In this document: in pieces, positions 7,856-62,226 of the stretch
Numbering within the stretch: position 1 is the stretch's first letter
Layout of the letters: every line of letters begins with the position of its first letter
Assembly: GCF_000143415.4 (NCBI RefSeq)
Contig: NW_003314263.1
Location: 1-64,000 of the forward strand
Source: Selaginella moellendorffii
Taxonomy: Eukaryota; Plantae; Lycopodiophyta
Direction: 5' to 3'
Length of the DNA stretch: 64,000 bases
The notes under the pieces: model-generated
Seen by the model: the letters and a program-made list of their open reading frames with translations, nothing else
Database searches by the model: none
What the model was told of the DNA's origin: nothing
Made by a program: the position numbers and the translations under genes

Positions 7856-10800
7856 CACCTTTGATTGTCCTTGAGGAGTGCTTGGATTTGGGATAATATT
7901 TTAGATCTAGCTTTTGCATCATCTAGATCTAGCTTTTTCCATTTCCTTTCTTTTGTTCTTTCTTTTCAAGGTTTTAATTTAGATCTAGCTTTTTGCATTG
8001 TCTAGATCTACCATTTCCTTCTAGCTTTTTGTCATTTCTCTTCTTTTGCTCTTTCTTTTTCATTCATCTTTATGGCAGATCAGTAATCTCCTCCTTTGAC
8101 TCTAGAGCAACAGTTGGTACAATTGCTTGATGCTATGCGCTTGCAATTGAACAACCAAACTCAGTTGATGGCAACGTTCATGGCACATGGTACAACTCCT
8201 TCTACTGTTGGTGTCAATCCTCGCGTTCGGCCGGAGTTCTTTCGCGGGAATCCTGGGGATGATGTGTACCATTGGTTCGATCACTTCACGGTGATTGCCA
8301 CATATCATTCTTGGGATGATGCTCGACGTTTGCGTGAGTTTCCCATCTGTCTCCAAGGGACAGCATTGCAGTGGTACAATGGTTTGAGCGCAGCCACTCT
8401 TGGGGATTAGAGTGTTCTCCCGGACATCTTCAAACGCGCCTTCGGACATGCCGATGATTGTGATGATGCTTTTCAACAATTGCATCGCCTTCGCCAAGGG
8501 CCATCTGAGTCGGTGATGCAATTTGGTGTTCGTTTTCGAAGTCTTTTGCTTCATGCGGAGCCAAATATGTCGGAGCAGATCAAGCTAGGAATGTTGTGGC
8601 CAGCACTTCTTCAAGATCTTGTCGGACTTGTGCATGCACTTGCTCCTTCCACCCTTGACGATGCTCTCGCTTGGCATAACGTTATGAGACATCGCCTCTT
8701 CCACTTCTCGCTACATGTCCTTCCGCTCCACTTCCTATGGGTGATGGTCCTGTTCCAATGGAGGTTGATGCTGCTGCTGCTCGAGTCCAAGGACAAGCGC
8801 GAGGATGTGGTCGTGGCCGTGATGGTCGCTGCTGGGTGTGTGATGAAGTTGGTCATACTTATCGGCGTTGCCGTCGTTTTCCGAATGGCGACCTCCATTT
8901 CCTGGGTGGAGACCTTGGTGTCAGCAACGTCCCGTGGGTGCTGCTGCAGTGGAAGGTCTGGACACCGAGATGCATCCGGGAAATGAGGAGTTGCGCGAGT
9001 AACGGAGGGACCTTGCGCGAATAAATCAGTGACCCCTCCATCTTTCTTTCGGGAGTATCATCAAGGGGTTCACTTGGCACCAGTTTATCCAGTGTTTACT
9101 TTCCAAGCTCGTTTTTATAACAAGAGGTCTTCTATTATTCTCTTTGTGTTGGTTGATACAGATTCGAGTTTATCTTCTATTGCTCGACCTGTTGCCACAC
9201 GTTGTCGTCTACACTTGCGTCGTGCGGTGGAACCAGTTTTCATTTTTTATGGCAACGACCATACACATGCATGTGCACGGGATGAGGTGGACCTGGTTGT
9301 ACGTGTGGGCGATCTCGAGCTTGAGTTGCAGTCGTTGCAGGTGGTGCCAAGTCAAGCTTTTGACCTCATTTTTGGTATGGATTGGTTGCAGCGCAATCAT
9401 GCCAAGTGTGATTTTGAGGCTTCTCCCCCTTATCTCATACTTCCTTATGTTTCATCCATTCCTCTCACTTTCGTACCTCTTCGTCCCTCTACTTCTACCT
9501 CTGCTTCCATTACTTTTGTTCCCCCACTCTTTCCTTCTGTGTTTCCATCTTGTTCTGCTTTTCCCTTTTCCAATCCCTCCGACGATCTTTGTGTTGCAGC
9601 AGTTGACCGGCTCATGAAGGAGTATTCTGATCTCTTTGAATTTGACCTATCGTCTGGGGCCAAGATTGCCACACGTCATCCGATTCCAACCGGGGATGCT
9701 CGTCCAATCAAGGTTCCTATTCGTCATCAGTCNNNNNNNNNNNNNNNNNNNNNNNNNNNNNNNNNNNNNNNNNNNNNNNNNNNNNNNNNNNNNNNNNNNN
9801 NNNNNNNNNNNNNNNNNNNNNNNNNNNNNNNNGAGCAAACGTCAAGGAAATGCTGGAGAAAGGTGTTATTCGGAAGTCGTGGAGTCCTTGGGCATGTGAC
9901 CCTCATCTTGTGACGAAGCCTGATGGGAGTATTCGTTTCTGCATCGACTATCGTCCGTTAAACGAAGTGACGATCCCAGATGTGTATCCTCTTCTTCACA
10001 CTGTTGATCTCTTAGATCGTCTGGGGCGAAGTCGTTGGTTCACCAAGCTAAATCTTGCTTCTGGGTATTGGCAAGTACCGATGGCCGAAGAAGATATTCC
10101 TAAGACTGCTTTTCGTACACTATTTGGTTTGTACGAGTTCTTGGTGATGCCGTTTGGTTTGAACAATGCTCCAGCAACTTTCCAGCGGATGATGGACGAG
10201 GTTCTTTGCGATATGCCGGAGGTGACTGCTGACTTCATTGATGATGTCTTGATCCACTCAGAGGGGATGTGGAAGGAGCACGTTTATGATGTTTGTAAAG
10301 TGTTGGATCGGTTATGCAACGTTGGTTTAAAGCTGAAACGGTCAAAGTGCGTGTTTGGGTCTAAGGACACAACTTATCTTGGGTATTGTATTTCTCGTGA
10401 AGGTTTGCAAGTTGATCCTGACAAACTTGTGGCTGTTCTAAAATTCCCTACTCCGAAGTGTGTGAATGATGTGTAGCGCTTCTTGGGTAAGGTGCAGTAT
10501 CTCAGTCGTTTTGTGGATCATCTTTCCGATCGCACTACACCATTGCGAGCATTGCTAAAGTCATCAACGTCATCTTTCATTTGGTCTCCGGATTGTGAGT
10601 GGGCATTCGTGGATCTCAAAGAGCTATTGACGACTCCTCTAGTTTTGGCATATCCTGACTACACAACCTTTTATTTTGTGTGTGGATGCTTCTAACATTG
10701 GTCTTAGAGGTGTGTTGATGCAAGAGAGCTCGAGTGTGCTTGGTTAGTGCCATCCCATTGCATACATAAGCCGTACATTACAACTAGCAGAGATGAACTA

Positions 10801-41383: not shown

Positions 41384-43214
41384 TGTGAGACACAAAATCC
41401 CTAGGCCCCAAAGTGGAGCTGGAAGGGCGCCACGTGGTAGTGGCCGAATCAAAAGCCAAACAAGCGTAACACGTTTGGACTAAAAGCTCTGACTTGAAAG
41501 GTCGAGAGCGGGANNNNNNNNNNNNNNNNNNNNNNNNNNNNNNNNNNNNNNNNNNNNNNNNNNNNNNNNNNNNNNNNNNNNNNNNNNNNNNNNNNNNNNN
41601 NNNNNNNNNNNNNNNNNNNNNNNNNNNNNNNNNNNNNNNNNNNNNNNNNNNNNNNNNNNNNNNNNNNNNNNNNNNNNNNNNNNNNNNNNNNNNNNNNNNN
41701 NNNNNNNNNNNNNNNNNNNNNNNNNNNNNNNNNNNNNNNNNNNNNNNNNNNNNNNNNNNNNNNNNNNNNNNNNNNNNNNNNNNNNNNNNNNNNNNNNNNN
41801 NNNNNNNNNNNNNNNNNNNNNNNNNNNNNNNNNNNNNNNNNNNNNNNNNNNNNNNNNNNNNNNNNNNNNNNNNNNNNNNNNNNNNNNNNNNNNNNNNNNN
41901 NNNNNNNNNNNNNNNNNNNNNNNNNNNNNNNNNNNNNNNNNNNNNNNNNNNNNNNNNNNNNNNNNNNNNNNNNNNNNNNNNNNNNNNNNNNNNNNNNNNN
42001 NNNNNNNNNNNNNNNNNNNNNNNNNNNNNNNNNNNNNNNNNNNNNNNNNNNNNNNNNNNNNNNNNNNNNNNNNNNNNNNNNNNNNNNNNNNNNNNNNNNN
42101 NNNNNNNNNNNNNNNNNNNNNNNNNNNNNNNNNNNNNNNNNNNNNNNNNNNNNNNNNNNNNNNNNNNNNNNNNNNNNNNNNNNNNNNNNNNNNNNNNNNN
42201 NNNNNNNNNNNNNNNNNNNNNNNNNNNNNNNNNNNNNNNNNNNNNNNNNNNNNNNNNNNNNNNNNNNNNNNNNNNNNNNNNNNNNNNNNNNNNNNNNNNN
42301 NNNNNNNNNNNNNNNNNNNNNNNNNNNNNNNNNNNNNNNNNNNNNNNNNNNNNNNNTTGGGTGATGAACTGACCACTGGGAAGTCCAAGACTAGAGTGAA
42401 TACGGACCGACAAGCGGGGTAGCTTGGTGAAGTGTTCAAGAGCCGGCTCTAGTTCCCCCGGGAGATCGACTGGCCGATGCTCCCAGTCCAAGTGTGGGTG
42501 GCACTACCTACTTGAATACCAGGCGTGGCTCAACGGAACCTCGCTCTAAGCCCATGGCTAGAGCACCCAAGGGAGGAAGGCGGGGAGAGTACCCAGGTGG
42601 CTCGCGTAAGGCCACGGTGTTTCGAAATGTTGTCCCAAAGGCCCAGACTGTGGAAAGGAAGAGGAGTAGTCTTTTGGGGTAGTGACCAAGGACTCAGTCG
42701 TGTGGTGAGGAAGTCCCAGAGGACCGTGGGACTTAGTGGTCGGGCCTGTGGGCCTCGATCCAGTGGCAGTGTTGGCAAACACGGTCAGGGGCAGAAAGGG
42801 ACTTAGTGGAGATTGACAGAGGGATATTAGGGAAGGCTATTCCCCTTGTCGGTGGGCATCCTAAGGATGCTAAGGAGTGGATCTGAGATGACCACTCACG
42901 GATGGATTGCCTAGTCTTGGAGAGCTAAGATTGCGATGCAAGTGGTATTGGACTACCAGTGTGGCAAAGGTGATTGGGCATGGCCTTAGCATAATAGGCT
43001 GCCATGTCGGTGGTACCTTTGAGTGCCGGTCATGGGATTGGACACGTGGAGCACCTGGACCAAGTGCAAATGTTGAGTGGCATAGATGCCATTCTCGGGG
43101 CTAGCAAGTCCTAAGTCCTAAATTGGACTTATGGAGGTGGTGAATGAGACTCCTCCAAGTGGTCGGAGGTGTGGTTAAGTGACTAAAGTAAAATGGAAAA
43201 ATTAGTCGCTTACA
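41384..43214 (+). repeat. 3' LTR (contains N gap 41514-42356)
   Basis: Direct repeat of 30213-31625. Confidence 0.93.
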
Positions 43215-49147: not shown

Positions 49148-50461
49148 TCACACGCTTAAGCCTTTTCTCAACTCGTCGTGTTGGAAGATTGTCCTGTTCG
49201 ATGGCTTGGAGCTAACTTTTCTCGCGGCCGGGAAGACGAACCAGGCCATGGACGCGAACACGATCGCCGCGACCATCCCGGTGCTGGTGAGCCCGAAGAG
49301 GATCACCACGACGATGAGCATCACTTGGACAGCACCCCCACCGTTGCCACCAACGCAGCTCTCGAGTTCTTCCTGCTGCTGGAGATGATTTAGCCTGCTT
49401 TGGTGATGGCTTCTCTGCTCGCTGTGATGCCTATGAGCCGGACTTCCACCTTGTTGTTGCTCGGTTTGATGCCTATGAGCCGGGCTTCCACCTCGTTGCT
49501 CGCTTTGAAATCTCGGCTGGTGTCTGTGGGCCGGACTTCCACCTTGTTGTTGCTCGCTTTGATGCCTGTGCGCCGGACTTCCACCCTGTTGTTGCTCGCT
49601 TTGAAATGGATTGTTCCTCGGTTGGTGTCTGTGGGCCGGACTTCCGACTTCCTGCGGCTTGTCCGAGCTGAAAAACGTCGAGCAGCTCATCACCGGGCTC
49701 ACCGGTGTGCTCGCTGACGTTGTCCTGCTGAAGTCGCTGGTGTTGCTGAAACTTCCACCTGATCCAAACTGATGGGGTTGCCTCGGGGAAGTAGGGGCCG
49801 AAACACAACTCATCGAGCCCGGCAGTGATCTCATTGTTACCGGACGCGCAAAGCTGAGGTCGATGTTGGGCTGCTGCGGGAAATTCACCGGAAGGTAACG
49901 AGCCCACATCGGTCTCAAGTGCCTGGCGATGAAAGACGAGGTGATGCCGGCCACGACCGCTATCAGCACGTCCACTATCGCCGCGACTATCATGATGAAC
50001 AATGTGATTGCCTTGAGCGCCTTCCTCGTCCCGTGTTGTAACTCGTAGACAAGCTGCTCAAACTTGACGGACAGCCAAGATTGTTTGCTGCAATCCTTGA
50101 CGCTATGGCTTTCCTCCTCGACGGAAGCTTGATCCGAGACAACGTCATCACCGGTCTTGCTCTCCGCGGAAGAATTCTGCTTGTCTAGCCGAGTCAGAGG
50201 CTGCGAATCCCCTCGAGAAGGGATGGACGATGAGCGGCTCCTGCCAACTACAACCGGTACCCAGTCCCTTCCTTTGGACGTGCCCCTCGTGAACCAAACA
50301 TCCGAGGTAGACACCCCTTCCTCAGCGGCAATCGAAGCTCGCAGTTTCTCCAGCTCGGAGTAGACCTCGTTAAACTTGTCCATCCCTCGGTTCTGGAATG
50401 GATTCTGCTTCCCCTTGGAAGAGCCGAACCTCGGTGACTTCCGCCTGCTGATCTTGCTCAT
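49148..50461 (-). CDS. ZCF37-like membrane protein with GSPAHRHQ repeats, intronless, 437 aa
   Basis: NPFQNRGMDKF..L..LR motif, WVPVVV, hydrophobic central and C-terminal segments. Confidence 0.75.
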   Translation of the reverse strand: MSKISRRKSPRFGSSKGKQNPFQNRGMDKFNEVYSELEKLRASIAAEEGVSTSDVWFTRGTSKGRDWVPVVVGRSRSSSIPSRGDSQPLTRLDKQNSSAESKTGDDVVSDQASVEEESHSVKDCSKQSWLSVKFEQLVYELQHGTRKALKAITLFIMIVAAIVDVLIAVVAGITSSFIARHLRPMWARYLPVNFPQQPNIDLSFARPVTMRSLPGSMSCVSAPTSPRQPHQFGSGGSFSNTSDFSRTTSASTPVSPVMSCSTFFSSDKPQEVGSPAHRHQPRNNPFQSEQQQGGSPAHRHQSEQQQGGSPAHRHQPRFQSEQRGGSPAHRHQTEQQQGGSPAHRHHSEQRSHHQSRLNHLQQQEELESCVGGNGGGAVQVMLIVVVILFGLTSTGMVAAIVFASMAWFVFPAARKVSSKPSNRTIFQHDELRKGLSV

Positions 50462-55657: not shown

Positions 55658-56017
55658 GGAGAGAGGGAGGGAGTGATGGAAGCAAAGAAGGAATTTAACT
55701 TGAGTCATGGAGCTAAGACAATGGTGGAGTATATAAATGATTTTTGTGGATGAGAGGATCAATCGTTTTCTCAGTCCAGCCCAGACACCACTCTAGTGTT
55801 TGTTTGATGCGAAAAATCCAATTATGCTTATAATGTGCACTTGTCTACCAAAGGTTGAGTGGGTAACGAAAATTTCCAACGCACTATAGATTTTGCGCGT
55901 GGGGTCATTGGTCGATGCTAGCTTGACCACCGTTGAATAAGTCAACACATTCTTGTGACGTCATCGAATTGATGTCGATGACTAGCGCGTTTGACTAATC
56001 GGAGCTTTTGAGTCAAC

Positions 56018-57633
56018 TTAATTGACTAGCTCGAGAAGACCCGACACACCGCGTCCGTGTGAGAGTTCCACGGCGCAGTCTGCGATCACCTGTGGATAAA
56101 AACAGTGTAGAAATCACGGGAAGACAAAGATTTTGGTTTTTTACCTGGGCCATCTTTGCGTACGAGAGTTGTGTCACTCCAGCGACGTGGGGAGTGAGAA
56201 TGACCTTGGGGTGCTGCAAAATCGGGTCTTGAGGATCGTATGGCTCGTGCCAAGCAACGTCCAAACCCAGTCCTCCCAGATGCCCCGTCTCAAGGCCATC
56301 TCTCACGGATTTGTAGTCCAAAAGCCCACCTCTGGCAACATTGACAACAAGCGCTCCCTGTTTTAGTTTGCAAGATTAGACTGGAAGAATCGCAAACGCG
56401 ACGCGATACCTTCTTCATGGAGTTTACGAACTTTTCGTTCACCATTCCAGCCTACAGACAGTAGCACTTGTCAGGAATTCCACGACGAAAGGAGATATGG
56501 CTTTTACTTACCGTTTCAGGAGTAAGGAGGCAGCACAGAACGATGATATCAGCTCGGCTTGCAAAGTCGTATAAAGAGTCCCCGCTGCCCTTTTCATCCA
56601 CCAGCAAATCTTCGTTCTCCTTGAGGTACTGAAACAACTGGTGAGATTTACGAGTTATCAGGCCATCTGCTAGAAGAGGATTGTCTGGAAACTACGACAT
56701 CAGAGATAACCAAATAAAAAACGAAAAAAGATCATAAGAAGAGTTTCAAGAGCCTTGCCTTCCGGATGAAGAGAACTATTCTTCTTGGACCACGAACGTT
56801 TAGTCGCAAGAACTCTGACTCCAAAAGCTCTCAAGCGGATCGCGAGCTCCTTGCCAATATTTCCATAGCCAACAATAAAAACCTGGAGAAAGCAAACTCT
56901 AAAAGCTTGAATCGATGCGAGAAATCCAGCGCTTACCGTTTTTCCAAACAAAGTATCACCCGTAGGAAATCCCAGGCATTTCTCGCTCACAGACTTGTCC
57001 ATCCCTTTCTGAAAGGCAAATCCAAAAGTTTTAGAACATAAGAAAACTCTCGCAAGCACCTGGTCACGAAGAAGAGCCAGCATCAAATAAATGGCGTGCT
57101 CAGCACACGAAAGAGCGTTTCCAGTGGCATCACTGGCAATTCTTCCTACTTTGATCCCAGCTTTAGTCGCAGCTTCAACGTCCACACCTGTCAAGAATCG
57201 TGAGTTCCAGTCAAGAACAATGCTGGACTACCTTCCAGGCCAACACCAAACTGGCAGATAAGCTGCATTCTCTTGGCGAGAGAGATCAAGCTCGAGTCCA
57301 CTTTCACCATTCTCGCCACGCACATGTCGTATTCGTGGAAAACCTTTGGAATTTCTTGGCAAGGAACAGCGTCGACCTGGGCAAACAAGAACATAGTAAC
57401 GACACTCGCAAGAACAAGCACAAGAAATCCTCGCTCACCTCGATCTGGCTGTGCGGCTCCAAATACCTCTTCGTCCACCGGAATCCATCAGGGAACACCG
57501 ATTCGGGGCCGCAGAAAAGGACTCGCACAGGCTGCACTGGCGATTTCACTTCAACAGGCGTCGCGGCCGCCATGCCCCTCGCTTGGCACCTCAATCTCCG
57601 CAGCTGCCGCGATCTACACAAGCCACGAATCAT
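56018..57633 (-). CDS. D-isomer-specific 2-hydroxyacid dehydrogenase family protein, multi-exon, probable organelle presequence
   Basis: QFGVGLEGVD, GNALSCAEHA, VGYGNIG Rossmann motif, VNVARGGLLD, DVAWHEP, ILTPHVAG. Confidence 0.93.
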
Positions 57634-57968
57634 GGAATCGCGGCGCCGGAGGGCGATTGCGACCGCGCTCTGGAAGAACCCTAGTCTTTCCATTCTTAAA
57701 CCCTTAACTAAAGGATTCCTTGAATATTCAAAAAATCTTAGTTTTTTTTACTTAAACCCTTTAACTAAACGAAATACTCGACAAAACTCCTTTTCCTCTT
57801 TTCTTCAAGAATAGTGCTGTTTGAATAAACTTTAATCAGCCAATATGCCAAGTGCACTCATCTGTGCCAAGTTCTATCTTGAGACACTTGTGATCAACCA
57901 AGGACGATCGTATAAACAGGAGATAATTTATCACATTGGAAGCAGCACTAGCACTACTAGCAAGAAAC

Positions 57969-58976
57969 ATGAGAAACATGGTGCTCCTCGTTGCAGCTTC
58001 AATTCTAATTTTGCTCATGAGCTTTGATCTCTGCCATGGACAGCCCCCGGCTAATCGCCAGTTTGGTGGAATCTTCAGGTGGCGGCTTGGTTTTGCACAG
58101 CTTGCCGTGGAGCACGTCGAAGACCTCATGAATCGCCTCGAGGCCTTCGTGGGAAGGAGGTTTAGAGGCAATTTTGGTTACTTTGCAGGAAGGAGCGTGG
58201 GATTCGTGGTGGAGTACGCAAACGATGCCTATGTCCGCGTGAGAGTGTGGCTCTACAGCCTAGCTTTCACTGAGAACTCAGACGTTTGCTCCATTGCGCC
58301 AAGTCGCGCGAGCCTCCCAGGGGGCGACCTCCTAGACAGCGTTGGGCGGATGATTGCAACCATCCGAGCGGAGCTGCTAGACGTGGGTCGCACGCAACGC
58401 TGGTTTGGCGAAGTCAACATAGTGCTCGGCTACTTTGGGATTGAGTATCAGTTCCAGGAAACCCCATTCAACAGCAATCCTGACGATAGGCCTGAAGGAG
58501 GTGGTGGATCAAGCGGTGAACTACTTGGGTTTGACCGCACTAACTTCCTTGTTCACCCAGTCAGCACGGTCGTTGGTTTGGGCGTTGACCCTGACGCCGG
58601 GAATTGCTGGGTCTTTGCTACGTCTCTAGTTGGCGGGAGTCACCCCCAGGGATCGACGCTGCCCGAGGGGAACAGCTTGGTCTCACCGAGCAGGGAGTTT
58701 AGGCTGTCTATGGAGGCCGGGTGTGATCTGGTGGTAAGACGTATCCACAGCGGGGAGATTGTCCGGAGGATTGTTCGTGGGAGGGATCAAGTGTGCGTCT
58801 TGTCTCTCTGGAAGAATGGGGTGCTCGTGGTCTCTGAATCGCGGGTGGTCATCTTGAAGACGAAAACAAACTATGGGTCCAAGCATTCGTATGGTCTGGC
58901 AATGGAGAACGATGGTCATGCCAGGCTTTATATGACAAACTTGGCAAAACAAATTTGGTCAACCGAGCACATATAG
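57969..58976 (+). CDS. Secreted protein: unknown N-terminal domain plus C-terminal bulb-type (GNA-like) lectin domain, intronless
   Basis: Signal peptide ending CHG; TLPEGNSLVS...FRLSMEAGCDLVV...LAMENDGHARLY...IWST pattern. Confidence 0.75.
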   Translation: MRNMVLLVAASILILLMSFDLCHGQPPANRQFGGIFRWRLGFAQLAVEHVEDLMNRLEAFVGRRFRGNFGYFAGRSVGFVVEYANDAYVRVRVWLYSLAFTENSDVCSIAPSRASLPGGDLLDSVGRMIATIRAELLDVGRTQRWFGEVNIVLGYFGIEYQFQETPFNSNPDDRPEGGGGSSGELLGFDRTNFLVHPVSTVVGLGVDPDAGNCWVFATSLVGGSHPQGSTLPEGNSLVSPSREFRLSMEAGCDLVVRRIHSGEIVRRIVRGRDQVCVLSLWKNGVLVVSESRVVILKTKTNYGSKHSYGLAMENDGHARLYMTNLAKQIWSTEHI

Positions 58977-60347
58977 AATAGAAGTGTATGTTCCAAAGTA
59001 ATACAGTTATGCTAACTTAAAAACGTCCCAGCTCCCGTGACAAGTTTCGAGGAGAAAGAAAAGGAGGCGATCGCTCGCAGTCAATTCCACTGCATGAGAC
59101 TGCAAAAGTCCTCTAGACTTGGCTCTTTGAATTCTAACTCTCCTAACTTTCTTGGCTGCATTTTAACCCCTCGATTCTCCAAAGCTCGCCTACAACCACC
59201 ACAAAAAACTCGGACTTGGCCGTGAGCAAATGTGAGAAAGCCAGTGCGTCCTTGTTTCAGCGGAATGCCTTGGCACGACCGCACCAATGCTTGGCTGGGA
59301 GTATCACCATGCATTCTGGAGGCAACGATTCGTCCTCAACTCCTTACGATTCTAATATCTAGAAACAGCACTTGGCGGAAAAGCATAGAACTCATAAACC
59401 CTTCCCGACAAAGTTGTGCTTCCTAAATGCCTTTCTTTGTCCTTGTTCAATGCTCAGGGAAAATGAGCAGCACTGAAATCATTGTCTGGAAACTAGCGAC
59501 ATCAGAGACAAGCATAAAAAAACAAAAGAAATAGTAAGAATAGTTCGGACAATCCAAATCAAAAGTTCCAGTCAGAATGTTATACTGGAAAACATTAGAG
59601 AACACCAAATTGGCATACAAGCCGCATTCTTTCATAAGCTGGCGATTTCACAGGCGTCGCTCCTCAATCTCCGCAGAGGACCATCAGAAAAAGTGAGTGA
59701 GGTGGGCAATTGCGGACATTTGTGCTGTCTAGCCAATGCAAATCATGCTCGCCACCATCTTGCCTTGTTGCATTACTAGCACTTGAGGTATACGGCACAA
59801 ACTCGTGGATTGCAAACCTCGTTACCGCCTAGGGGCGCGTTGGCGCCCCAGGGAACGATGGAGGCAAGCAAGTAGACCGCCAACAGCCTGCCCACGACGT
59901 TGGACTTCGAGTGCACTTGCAAGAAGAGGGAGCTGGAGTAGCGGCTAGATCAAAGGATCTCGCAGAGACTTGTCCGAGGTCAACTTCGAGTTCCGATTCA
60001 AGGGAGGGATCAATCCAGCCTGGATGGTGGTGAAGCTGGAGAGTATGTTGGCGACGAAGCTCCAAGGATGAAAGGCAGTGCGTGAGTGAGAGGTGATCAT
60101 GGAGGCAATGCACAGGTTCACGGCTGGCAACGATATCAATGTGATTAGCCTTGAAAGTTTGACAGACTACACACGGGACAAAGAAGGATGATAAAGATGG
60201 AGTGGGAGGTAAAGTTTGGGAGACAGGACGAGGCTTGCATTGCCAAGGCCATCAACAAGAGAGGTATGGAACTCATTGCTCGTCTTGGTCACTTACACTT
60301 GGTTTTCTTGGAGTTGTTTTGTTTCTTTTTCTTCTAACTTCTTCAAC

Positions 60348-60647
60348 TCGTAACGAACCTACAGTTAGGCGTGTAGTTGACCGTTGTTGAACATTCATGT
60401 CATGTCATCGAATTAGTTTCGCTGAATCGACTGCCTGGAACAACAGAACAATTTTTCCTGGCCCACGGACATTCAGTCGCAAGAACTAACCAGCCAACGA
60501 TTAAAACCTGGAGAGAAAAAGAAAGCTCTAAAACTTGAATCGATGCGCCTTACCATTTTTCCAAACAAAATATCACCTCCAAAAGTTTCACAAATCACGC
60601 AAGCACCCGGTCACGAAGTGGATCATCCAATTTCTACTTTCCCATCC
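60348..60647 (-). pseudogene. Shattered copy of the 3' half of the dehydrogenase gene
   Basis: Blocks match 55860-57160 (gtcatcgaatt, agtcgcaagaact, aaaacctggaga, cttgaatcgatgcg, tttccaaacaaa, cgcaagcacc.ggtcacgaag), including intron sequence. Confidence 0.8.
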
Positions 60648-60829
60648 CTGAGGATAAAGAACCCTACTTTCTCCCCAAACATATATACTTGGCGCGCATT
60701 GATCGCTGGCCGTCGATATGATGATGTAATCGCCACCGTTGGAGCGCTTGGCTAATCGCAACAAGCTGGAATCTCCACCGTTGGCTCCCCTATGAATAGA
60801 AAAGGTTCGAGCCTAGGGTTTCAGGTATA

Positions 60830-61720
60830 ATGGCGACGATCAAGAGCATCGAGAAGTGCGTTGCGAGGTACGAATCCCTGCCCGACAAAAAGAAGAGCGG
60901 CGCGCTCAAGCAGGGCACAGCAATGGTGAAAGAATTCGTGTTCCAAGTGGCAAACATCGAGGGCGAAGGGCTCGACACACTGGAAGAGGTCAGCGATGCC
61001 ATTGACCAGTACAACCACTCAAAGTCTTTTGCGCTCGATGGCTTTGGCGGCGACAGGAAGCCAAAGCTCGTGTCAACGCTCAACCTGTACAGGTGCCTGT
61101 GCCGGGTCAACGCCCAGGCCAAGGCCGACAAGGTTCCACGCTTAGATTCCGGGAAGATTCTCCGGATCCACAAGATGCTCGGGGAGAACACCAAGGACGA
61201 GGTTGATGCGGGCGAGTTTAGGAGGGGCGAGGCGTGGACATTGACAACAGAGAGGCGGAAGCATGTCTACATGGATCCCAAGAAGATCCCGGCGGCTTTG
61301 GAGCAGCTCCTGTCAGCCACCAACAAATCCCTCGAGGAGGCATTTGCAGCAGATCCCAAGCTCAGGGTTGCAAAGCTGTTGAGCATTGGCGCCAGCTTCT
61401 TTTACAAGTTTGAGTGCATTCATCCGTTTAGGGATGGGAATGGACGCGTGGGGAGGCTTATGGTGCTCTACTTGCTTACCTCCATAGTTCCTTGGGGCGC
61501 AAACAATCTCTATGCGCCCCGGGGTGGGGACGAGGCTTGCAATCCCCGGGCTCCTCCCAAGTTTGTGGACAAGGCCATGTATCTTAAGTGCTTCCAGGTG
61601 ATGCAACAAGGAGGCAAGAACAGAGGCGAGCAGCAGCAGCATCCGGTGGAGTTGGAGGCACTTTTGGCCGAAGGGATTCATGTTGGCTGGACAAAGTTTG
61701 CAGCCAAAGCAAATGTATAG
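60830..61720 (+). CDS. Fic/Fido-domain protein, putative adenylyltransferase, intronless, 296 aa
   Basis: Canonical HPFRDGNGRVGR (61421-61456), ILRIHKML, AGEFR flap, N-terminal VANIEG inhibitory-helix-like motif; TATA-like at about 60681. Confidence 0.95.
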   Translation: MATIKSIEKCVARYESLPDKKKSGALKQGTAMVKEFVFQVANIEGEGLDTLEEVSDAIDQYNHSKSFALDGFGGDRKPKLVSTLNLYRCLCRVNAQAKADKVPRLDSGKILRIHKMLGENTKDEVDAGEFRRGEAWTLTTERRKHVYMDPKKIPAALEQLLSATNKSLEEAFAADPKLRVAKLLSIGASFFYKFECIHPFRDGNGRVGRLMVLYLLTSIVPWGANNLYAPRGGDEACNPRAPPKFVDKAMYLKCFQVMQQGGKNRGEQQQHPVELEALLAEGIHVGWTKFAAKANV

Positions 61721-61881
61721 TGTTAAAGTAGTAAAAGTATATATGTGTTAATGAATATAGAACTGGCTTTCAACCTTGCATTGCTCTTAAAAGAAAGAAT
61801 ATGCCTCTGTTTACGTTAAGAATAACCACAAGAATATGCCCTTTAATCGATTTAAACTTTTGGCACGAAGATTGTAAGGGG

Positions 61882-62226
61882 TAGGGTTCTATCCGCATGG
61901 TGTAGATCGCAGCAGCTGATTGAGGTGCCACGCGAGGGGCATGCAAAATCGCCCGTGCGAGCCTTCCTGATGGATTCCGGTGGACGAAGAAGTTTTTGTT
62001 CTTGCAAGTTGTTTGTCTGCCCAAGTGCATGTCGTTACTTTGTTCTTGTCAGTTGCCCAGGTCAACACTGTTCTTTGCGAAGAAATTCCAAGGTTTCCCA
62101 GGAATACGATATGTGCGTGGCAAGAATGATGAAACTAGAAGAATGCAGCTAATCTTCCAATTTGGTGTTGTATTCTTGACTGGAATATTCATTTTGGACT
62201 ATCGATTCCTTGAACAGGTGATGGAA
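61882..62226 (+). pseudogene. Shattered, inverted copy of the 5' half of the dehydrogenase gene
   Basis: Reverse complement of blocks in 57180-57684; translates EYDMCVARM, RMQLIFQFGV. Confidence 0.88.

Follow-up and report, generated by a model that had tools for sequence, protein, structure and literature searches.

Identification of an Intact Fic Gene

The locus described here raises the question of whether a land plant carries a working Fic enzyme of its own, as a recent review on AMPylation, in which adenosine monophosphate (AMP) is transferred onto proteins, treats eukaryotic FIC as one metazoan gene, missing from plants and fungi (PMC12409994). The window under study is a stretch of 64,000 nucleotides of the Selaginella moellendorffii genome (NCBI RefSeq assembly GCF_000143415.4, contig NW_003314263.1, positions 1 to 64,000 of the forward strand). 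A sequence-only reading of this window had pointed to a Fic gene near its 3' end, undescribed in plants and possibly acquired by horizontal transfer, and had named RNA sequencing, the ratio of nonsynonymous to synonymous substitution rates (dN/dS) and a paralogue count among the possible checks. The results reported below make it probable that positions 60830-61720 (+) hold a functional, transcribed and so far unannotated nuclear gene for a stand-alone class II Fic enzyme, representing one deep lineage of an old, intronless family of lycophytes and ferns.

The open reading frame (ORF) listing of the window returned an intact frame at 60830..61720 on the plus strand, with an ATG start, 296 codons plus stop and no introns, and an in-frame TAG at 60797-60799 shuts the same frame just upstream. 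At the local stop-codon frequency of 0.051, the chance that any one frame stays open over 296 codons is about 2e-7. The encoded protein has a mass of about 33 kDa and a pI of 9.2. Neither a transmembrane segment nor a signal peptide was detected (maximum 19-residue Kyte-Doolittle hydropathy of 1.15, hydrophilic N-terminus); Pfam returned no tetratricopeptide repeat (TPR), and the AlphaFold model discussed below superposes on the Fic domain of human FICD (residues 192-435) only and not on its TPRs. An exact-match look-up in public protein records gave no entry and the top match of an exhaustive phmmer search of 1.84 billion cluster representatives was only 38% identical; the ORF is therefore an unannotated gene, contained in no public protein set.

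The protein matched the Pfam Fic profile PF02661 (Fic/DOC) with an E value of 1.1e-17; the score was 65.1 bits where the gathering cutoff is 24, and the match extended over profile positions 2-93 of 93. The catalytic loop HPFRDGNGRVGR (aa 198-209, 61421..61456, plus strand) shows the full HxFx(D/E)GN(G/K)RxxR motif, and its H, P, F, G, N, G and R residues do not vary in an alignment of 46 Fic proteins. The full HPFx(D/E)GN(G/K)RxxR sequence is the form associated with AMPylation, according to PMC2686095 and PMC8097203. Close to the C-terminus, the block HPVELEALLAEGIHVGWTKFAA (61640..61705, plus strand) is conserved in and specific to the family to which the protein belongs, with the family consensus P..L.AL.IEGVYVGWKRFF. 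The uninterrupted 296-residue frame, the complete catalytic motif and the absence of signal peptide, transmembrane segment and TPRs claimed by the sequence-only reading were thus all recovered in these analyses.

Structural Comparison and the Inhibitory Helix

An AlphaFold2 model was calculated from a 46-sequence alignment, with a predicted local distance difference test (pLDDT) value of 88 and a predicted template modelling (pTM) score of 0.89. The modelled structure is all-helical except for a single beta-hairpin at aa 136-146 (61235..61267, plus strand; DSSP strands 136-138 and 144-146), which the superposition on FICD places at the position of the Fic flap, where the target residue docks; the hairpin is thus the predicted flap of the window protein. 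The model was compared with known structures by Foldseek and VIA-align. The highest VIA-align Z score was obtained with Bacteroides BT_2513 (3cuc, Z 26.1), followed by human FICD, on whose residues 192-435 the whole model (1-296) superposed with a Z of 25.8 and a root mean square deviation of 2.4 A over 242 residues. Dde_2494 and Caenorhabditis elegans FIC-1 both gave a Z of 24.3, CdFic 22.2 and SoFic 20.8, whereas toxin-type class I and class III Fic proteins gave just Z 12-14 and covered aa 67-290 only. CdFic was also the best single-sequence match in the Protein Data Bank (PDB; E=2e-7), and the nearest Atlas folds were bacterial SoFic-like clusters with a template modelling score of 0.77. 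According to the model, the ORF product folds as a Fic domain and falls among class II Fic proteins; assignment to the class I toxin-antitoxin group was rejected on the structural scores.

Class II Fic proteins carry an N-terminal inhibitory helix with the motif (S/T)xxxE(G/N), for which the sequence-only reading had named animal FICD as an example. A profile built from the plant family together with remoter relatives (alignment A1) matched C. elegans FIC-1 and human FICD with E values of 1e-21 to 1e-19 and paired the consensus 'fqvnkiegeG' with FICD 'YHTVAIEGN', setting Val40 on Thr230 and Glu44 on Glu234. In the window protein the corresponding segment is FQVANIEG (aa 38-45, 60941..60964, plus strand). 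Its IEG (Glu44-Gly45) lies at the end of model helix 30-44 and agrees column for column with FICD 'IEGN', so that the E(G/N) part of the class II motif is present. The profile and the model thus agree with the sequence-only reading on the helix, and both the retained glutamate and the replacement of Ser/Thr by Val that it had noted were seen. The replacement, however, is not particular to this copy, since Val at the Ser/Thr position is conserved in the plant family ('QVN.IEG') and is therefore a family trait rather than a lesion or a peculiarity of this gene; in P0064 and P0066, which belong to the remote sister group, the residue is Ser. In FICD, the inhibitory glutamate forms a salt bridge with the second arginine of the catalytic loop (Arg374), which locks the enzyme in an AMPylation-incompetent state, and wild-type FICD enzymes then work as de-AMPylases (PMC8097203).

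Transcription and Selective Constraint

Contigs of four public sequencing runs were aligned to positions 58500-64000; three of these runs, from three studies, were presumed to be RNA and one was DNA. In the alpha/beta-hydrolase gene next to the ORF, contigs of the three presumed RNA runs displayed three precise GT..AG joints that were missing from the DNA run, and these three runs are therefore RNA. The RNA contigs of all three runs spanned 60837-61770 gap-free with 98.5-99% identity, while nothing was found over 58500-60836 or 61771-62404 in the same runs. The DNA run, on the contrary, filled each of the 30 bins, over the ORF as well as its two flanks. As RNA was present over the ORF and missing from its flanks whereas DNA was present everywhere, the ORF, or an allele of it from other plants, gives rise to an unspliced transcript with a short 3' untranslated region. 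The stretch was found in 20 runs from 7 studies, nearly all of one organism.

Among the 12 natural variant positions recorded inside the ORF, 8 were synonymous and 4 nonsynonymous, corresponding to a ratio of nonsynonymous to synonymous polymorphism (pN/pS) of 0.14 (binomial P=0.0012 against the neutral site proportion). The gene is under purifying constraint. The RNA sequencing check of the sequence-only reading was thus answered by unspliced contigs over the ORF in three RNA studies, and its hint of selection agreed with the pN/pS of about 0.14. For dN/dS, which the same reading had named as a check, the recent paralogues L001 and L006 gave a value of about 0.6.

The Plant Fic Family

The phmmer search at E<=1e-10 returned nine representatives, namely four S. 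moellendorffii proteins, two hypothetical proteins of the fern Adiantum nelumboides and three unnamed Logan contigs; the weaker matches P0077 and P0102 are also S. moellendorffii genes. Word-index searches were swamped by bacterial and archaeal proteins sharing words of the catalytic loop and missed the plant relatives, which were found only by exhaustive phmmer; a bacterial-only or empty outcome of such searches thus carries little weight for this gene. Some members already bear names, RefSeq listing S. moellendorffii XP_024542721.1 as 'adenosine monophosphate-protein transferase fic-1' and UniProt listing D8SRP9 as 'Fido domain-containing protein'. Seven diverged Fic lineages were located on at least eight S. 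moellendorffii scaffolds, some as tandem pairs, with ordinary plant genes as neighbours (ABC transporter, PHD, RNase III, receptor kinase, pectinesterase and polyphenol oxidase). Pairwise identity between lineages ranges from 23 to 60%, indicating an old family, and the window ORF shares 33-38% identity with its closest S. moellendorffii and fern relatives; it is devoid of the N-terminal 'PxWR' extension found in most paralogues. The single gene pictured by the sequence-only reading has therefore to be replaced by a family of seven lineages on at least eight scaffolds, with fern homologues.

When the DNA of the paralogue loci was read again, each contained an uninterrupted frame of 265-363 codons with a perfect Fic motif. 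In the public models P0058 (EFJ09681), P0077 and P0102, spurious introns remove the catalytic loop and with it the Pfam Fic match, while the ORFs read from the DNA of these three loci (L008:10001-11092 on GL377660, L010:5001-6026 on GL377605 and L012:9878-10882 on GL377589) span 363, 341 and 334 codons, carry perfect motifs and score 42-58 bits with Pfam. The paralogue on GL377660 (L008:10001-11092) begins with a hydrophobic, signal-peptide-like N-terminus (MLLRFILAIALVIAV...) and the one on GL377605 (L010:5001-6026) ends in a basic tail resembling a nuclear localisation signal (RPKKRRRK...); the window copy has neither feature. Judging from the predicted proteins, different paralogues may act in different compartments. 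The intact GL377660 gene has a second, short Fic fragment (HPFLDGNGRCSR, 59-codon frame) about 1 kb upstream of it, at L008:~9662, and this pairing of an intact gene with a decayed fragment is the same pattern as that seen at the window locus.

Phylogeny and Origin of the Family

In a tree calculated with IQ-TREE, without metazoan FICD, the nine plant rows formed one clade (ultrafast bootstrap, UFboot, 86; SH-aLRT 89; present in 89% of bootstrap trees), within which fern and lycophyte sequences interleave in a subclade supported at 100/99. The plant clade lies within a super-clade, also at 100/99, together with two unlabelled groups and apart from DPANN-archaeal and bacterial Fic proteins. Two of the sister-group contigs have a eukaryote-like low coding density and a third looks prokaryotic. 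One of the two contigs with low coding density, a 65-kb metagenome contig from ENA (L005), carries three Fic genes without introns, which belong to the remote sister group, beside a gene with a NACHT domain. As further leads only, the language-model neighbours were mollusc and ascomycete Fido clusters. Among the best 150 matches, not all of which could be labelled, no seed-plant or bryophyte member was identified.

The GC content at third codon positions (GC3) of the ORF is 0.71, within the 0.66-0.77 range of the neighbouring host genes. Since the nearest relatives are S. moellendorffii and fern genes gathered in one plant clade and GC3 is host-like, the gene has long been resident in the genome as part of a multigene family. 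The family would have been acquired or inherited long ago, before or at about the time when lycophytes and ferns diverged, and would then have duplicated. This is at variance with the recent arrival considered by the sequence-only reading, given the host-like GC3, relatives that are 33-38% identical and the single plant clade. As for its wider suggestion of horizontal acquisition, a recent transfer is contradicted by coverage, GC3 and phylogeny, while the whole plant family may have an ancient horizontal origin.

Comparison with Known Fic Systems

Metazoan FICD/HYPE (human FICD, C. elegans FIC-1), the endoplasmic reticulum (ER)-resident AMPylase and de-AMPylase of BiP, is among the top solved-structure matches by both fold and profile, and shares with the window protein a complete catalytic loop, an inhibitory N-terminal helix whose Glu occupies the homologous position and a location in a eukaryotic nuclear genome. 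The window protein differs in having no transmembrane anchor and no TPR domain, in its sequence identity of only 18% and in the presence of Val40 where FICD has Thr. Metazoans are described as having just one FICD gene (PMC8097203), in contrast to the many paralogues of Selaginella, and a cytosolic location of the window protein would put the ER-lumenal BiP out of its reach. FICD and FIC-1 were the best profile matches among solved structures, but archaeal and unlabelled eukaryote-like sequences equalled or exceeded them in large databases; with a profile of the plant sequences only, DPANN-archaeal Fic reached about 79 bits versus 57 bits for FIC-1. The window protein is probably not an orthologue of FICD, given the missing anchor and TPRs, the 18% identity and the equal or better scores of archaeal Fic with the plant-only profile.

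Bacterial class II Fic proteins (BT_2513/3cuc, SoFic, Dde_2494 and CdFic) have the same layout of one chain with an inhibitory helix followed by the Fic core. The window protein lacks the C-terminal winged-helix domain of many SoFic-like proteins and has the family-specific C-terminal 'IEGVYVGWKRFF' block and the 'QVN.IEG' inhibitory motif, while its gene is eukaryotic with host-like codon usage. Class I (VbhT/VbhA, FicT/FicA) and class III (NmFic) systems share the Fic core and the catalytic loop, but their inhibitory Glu is provided by a separate antitoxin or by a C-terminal helix, in contrast to the N-terminal helix of the window protein. The closest counterparts remain the annotated Fic proteins of S. 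moellendorffii and A. nelumboides (XP_024542721.1, D8SRP9, MCO5567833.1), which fall in the same plant clade and share three conserved blocks (N-terminal, catalytic and C-terminal), the absence of introns and the length class. These proteins are 26-38% identical to the product of the window ORF, which differs from them in being unannotated and without the 'PxWR' extension.

Proposed Function and Alternative Explanations

From the predicted sequence and the model, we infer that the protein is most likely an auto-inhibited AMP-transferase/de-AMPylase acting outside the secretory pathway. The predicted enzyme would bind ATP, or another nucleoside triphosphate, at the HPFRDGNGRVGR loop; the side chain of the target would dock on the beta-hairpin flap and AMP would be passed to a Ser, Thr or Tyr hydroxyl of the target. 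The N-terminal helix would set Glu44 against Arg209, as Glu234 is set against Arg374 in FICD, so that the default state would be AMPylation-incompetent, and possibly de-AMPylating, until the inhibition is relieved. The site of action would be the cytosol or the nucleus, because the protein has no signal peptide, transmembrane segment, TPRs or other domain.

Several observations weigh against a functional, auto-inhibited enzyme. The Ser/Thr expected four residues ahead of Glu in (S/T)xxxE(G/N) is absent and Val40 stands in its place. The contact between Glu44 and Arg209 is putative, being modelled on the FICD Glu234-Arg374 pair by superposition and alignment. The ORF is set in a rearranged region full of gene debris. 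The RNA contigs carry no information on strand, true 5' end or expression level and, being about 1.5% different from the window, may derive from another haplotype or accession rather than from this exact copy. One of them (X4) starts at 60837, 7 nt past the ATG, which leaves the start codon unproven, the next in-frame ATG encoding Met32. The variant count behind the pN/pS value is small, and 2 of the 13 differences of the X4 contig are not in the variant list. Constraint is also uneven across the family, as shown by the dN/dS of about 0.6 of the recent paralogue pair L001 and L006.

The debris around the gene would suit a transcribed relic, that is, a young pseudogene in a decaying duplicated region that has not yet gained a stop codon. 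Decayed Fic and dehydrogenase fragments at the flanks, a broken hydrolase copy, the missing 'PxWR' extension and the lack of public annotation as a gene all agree with it. A sequence sharing at most 38% identity with any annotated paralogue is, however, old, and yet its frame and all its motifs are intact; together with the excess of synonymous variants, the high-confidence fold and the presence of RNA over the ORF only, this renders a relic very improbable. An even more negative judgement applies to the readings that the gene arrived by recent horizontal transfer or that DNA of a bacterial contaminant was joined to the assembly, both of which we consider effectively refuted. Fic genes are mostly prokaryotic, the ORF has no introns and the word-index searches gave bacterial and archaeal matches only. 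Nevertheless, the DNA run fills 30 of 30 bins and 20 runs from 7 studies hold the stretch, GC3 is host-like and plant gene fragments are interleaved with the ORF, and the nearest relatives are Selaginella and fern genes, in a clade kept apart from archaeal and bacterial Fic at 100/99. Both contamination and recent transfer were rejected on read coverage, GC3 and phylogeny.

The remaining alternatives accept a working gene and concern its chemistry or its biological role. The Fic fold might serve another reaction, such as the transfer of uridine monophosphate (UMP), guanosine monophosphate or phosphocholine or a phosphotransferase activity, or the protein might be mainly a de-AMPylase or a non-catalytic binding protein. 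The same core motif is known with other donors, AnkX (phosphocholine) and XopAC/AvrAC (UMP) being among the weak NCBIfam and PDB matches, the PDB relative 7cb8 has cytidine diphosphate bound, and the protein, having kept Glu44, would lean towards de-AMPylation like wild-type FICD (PMC8097203). The closest solved structures, on the other hand, are AMPylases, and the full HPFx(D/E)GN(G/K)RxxR motif is the AMPylation-associated form (PMC8097203 and PMC2686095), and we regard a different chemistry as quite unlikely. Fic catalysis would also be compatible with a fast-turnover conflict or immunity family in place of a housekeeping regulator, a reading in which only the biological role differs. The paralogues would then act in defence of the plant or in intragenomic conflict, as guards, decoys or executioners, and this would account for their expansion in copy number, their local clusters and the pseudogene debris. 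Seven lineages on at least eight scaffolds, tandem and head-to-head pairs, decayed fragments beside intact genes, the dN/dS of about 0.6 in recent duplicates and the remote sister-group contig with three Fic genes by a NACHT gene speak in favour of such a role. No physical or expression link to an immune component was seen in Selaginella, though; the paralogues are flanked by unrelated housekeeping, receptor-like kinase or metabolic genes, and the variants of the window ORF are conservatively constrained (pN/pS 0.14), so that a conflict role appears unlikely.

Significance for AMPylation in Plants

A wider proposal is that an AMPylation system of their own is endogenous to seed-free vascular plants, consisting of an ancient and expanded family of FICD-like stand-alone Fic proteins whose paralogues, in different compartments, would reversibly AMPylate chaperones or signalling proteins; the family would stem from the ancestor of vascular plants or from an older eukaryotic Fic lineage and would have been lost in seed plants. 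We put this forward as possible but rather doubtful. If true, it would overturn the review statement that places FIC in metazoans but not in plants. The existence of the plant Fic family by itself contradicts the stated absence of FIC from plants, as many intact Fic genes occur in a lycophyte and a fern and the window copy is expressed and constrained. To AMPylation researchers, the existence of such an expanded family in vascular plants without seeds would come as a surprise.

Searching the literature on Selaginella, fern or plant Fic proteins, we found no dedicated study and no characterised plant Fic. The sequence-only reading had called the gene undescribed in plants, which holds in so far as no characterising paper was found and the 2025 review considers FIC absent, but relatives are deposited in RefSeq and UniProt and the supplement of a 2015 in-silico survey lists plant Fic proteins in passing, in a mixed clade of amoeba, plant and fungal sequences (PMC4454073). 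Novelty is thus limited: several members already appear under Fic or Fido names, the 2015 survey mentions them, and the fold and motif are usual for class II Fic.

The S. moellendorffii protein sets do not include the window gene and at least three paralogues are mis-modelled, so that domain-based surveys undercount the family because spurious introns delete the catalytic loop in these paralogues. With this family, a naturally occurring group of FICD-like catalytic domains that have neither TPR nor membrane anchor is available for comparison, and endogenous reversible AMPylation in plants is now open to direct testing.

Genomic Neighbourhood of the Fic Gene

The sequence-only reading had described the neighbours of the ORF as decayed, and the Fic fragment, the dehydrogenase pieces and the hydrolase copy described below agree with that description. 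A decayed fragment of a closer Fic paralogue lies head-to-head with the intact ORF at 59779..59896 on the minus strand, as detected by tblastn (E=9e-12), by frame translation and by a 58-nt inverted repeat at 84% identity. This 118-nt remnant matches aa 207-254 at 60% amino acid identity, is without the catalytic His-Pro-Phe part and has its frame closed by stop codons. A possible further remnant of the same decayed paralogue (59019..59150, minus strand) matches aa 253-290 weakly, at 38% identity (tblastn E=0.086, by itself not significant).

A 2-hydroxyacid dehydrogenase gene at 56013-57700 (-) looks intact and has scrambled partial copies on both sides of the Fic ORF. An inverted decayed copy of its 5' part (57241-57619) was found by blastn at 61900..62170 (+) with 86-94% identity and inverted repeats I2, I3, I5, I7 and I9, a direct decayed copy of internal pieces (56764-56960) at 60437..60577 and another decayed piece at 59481-59631, the last two by blastn and repeat comparison. 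These copies indicate repeated local duplication and inversion. A mobile-element cassette was rejected: comparison of positions 58000-64000 with five paralogue loci by blastn gave no common non-coding sequence, and the local repeats are pieces of the adjacent dehydrogenase gene rather than transposon terminal repeats. Since no non-coding sequence is shared with other Fic loci, the locus reflects local duplication and decay and not a recently mobile cassette.

On the other side, an alpha/beta-hydrolase gene occupies 62405..63596, delineated by spliced RNA contigs with GT..AG introns of 49-70 nt, a size that fits S. moellendorffii. Its copy in the window misses 83 bp at 62566/62567 that are present in all reads compared, every aligned contig having extra letters at this point, which amount to 32 nt in the RNA contigs and 83 nt in the DNA contigs. 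Either the reference copy has thus lost 83 bp, comprising 32 nt of exon and an intron of 51 nt, or it was misassembled; the frame would be shifted. The gene is flanked by an inverted repeat, at 62229-62295 and 63893-63968, with 94-95% identity (33 + 38 nt). RNA contigs of the next gene, a RING-H2 gene on the minus strand, stop in a splice-like loose end exactly at 63893.

Elsewhere, the window encodes a PHT1-type phosphate transporter and, at 49151-50461 (-), a 437-aa repeat-rich protein, both exact members of NCBI clusters whose other members bear the name S. moellendorffii. The 437-aa protein falls in a 90% cluster with variously modelled S. moellendorffii proteins from the same scaffold. 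The models in this cluster are 419, 437 and 1043 aa long and some are named RHOMBOID-like 9, which points to inconsistent gene models and to a duplicate or haplotype copy close by. Runs of N at 2139-2238 (100 nt), 9733-9832 (100 nt) and 41514-42356 (843 nt) are assembly gaps.

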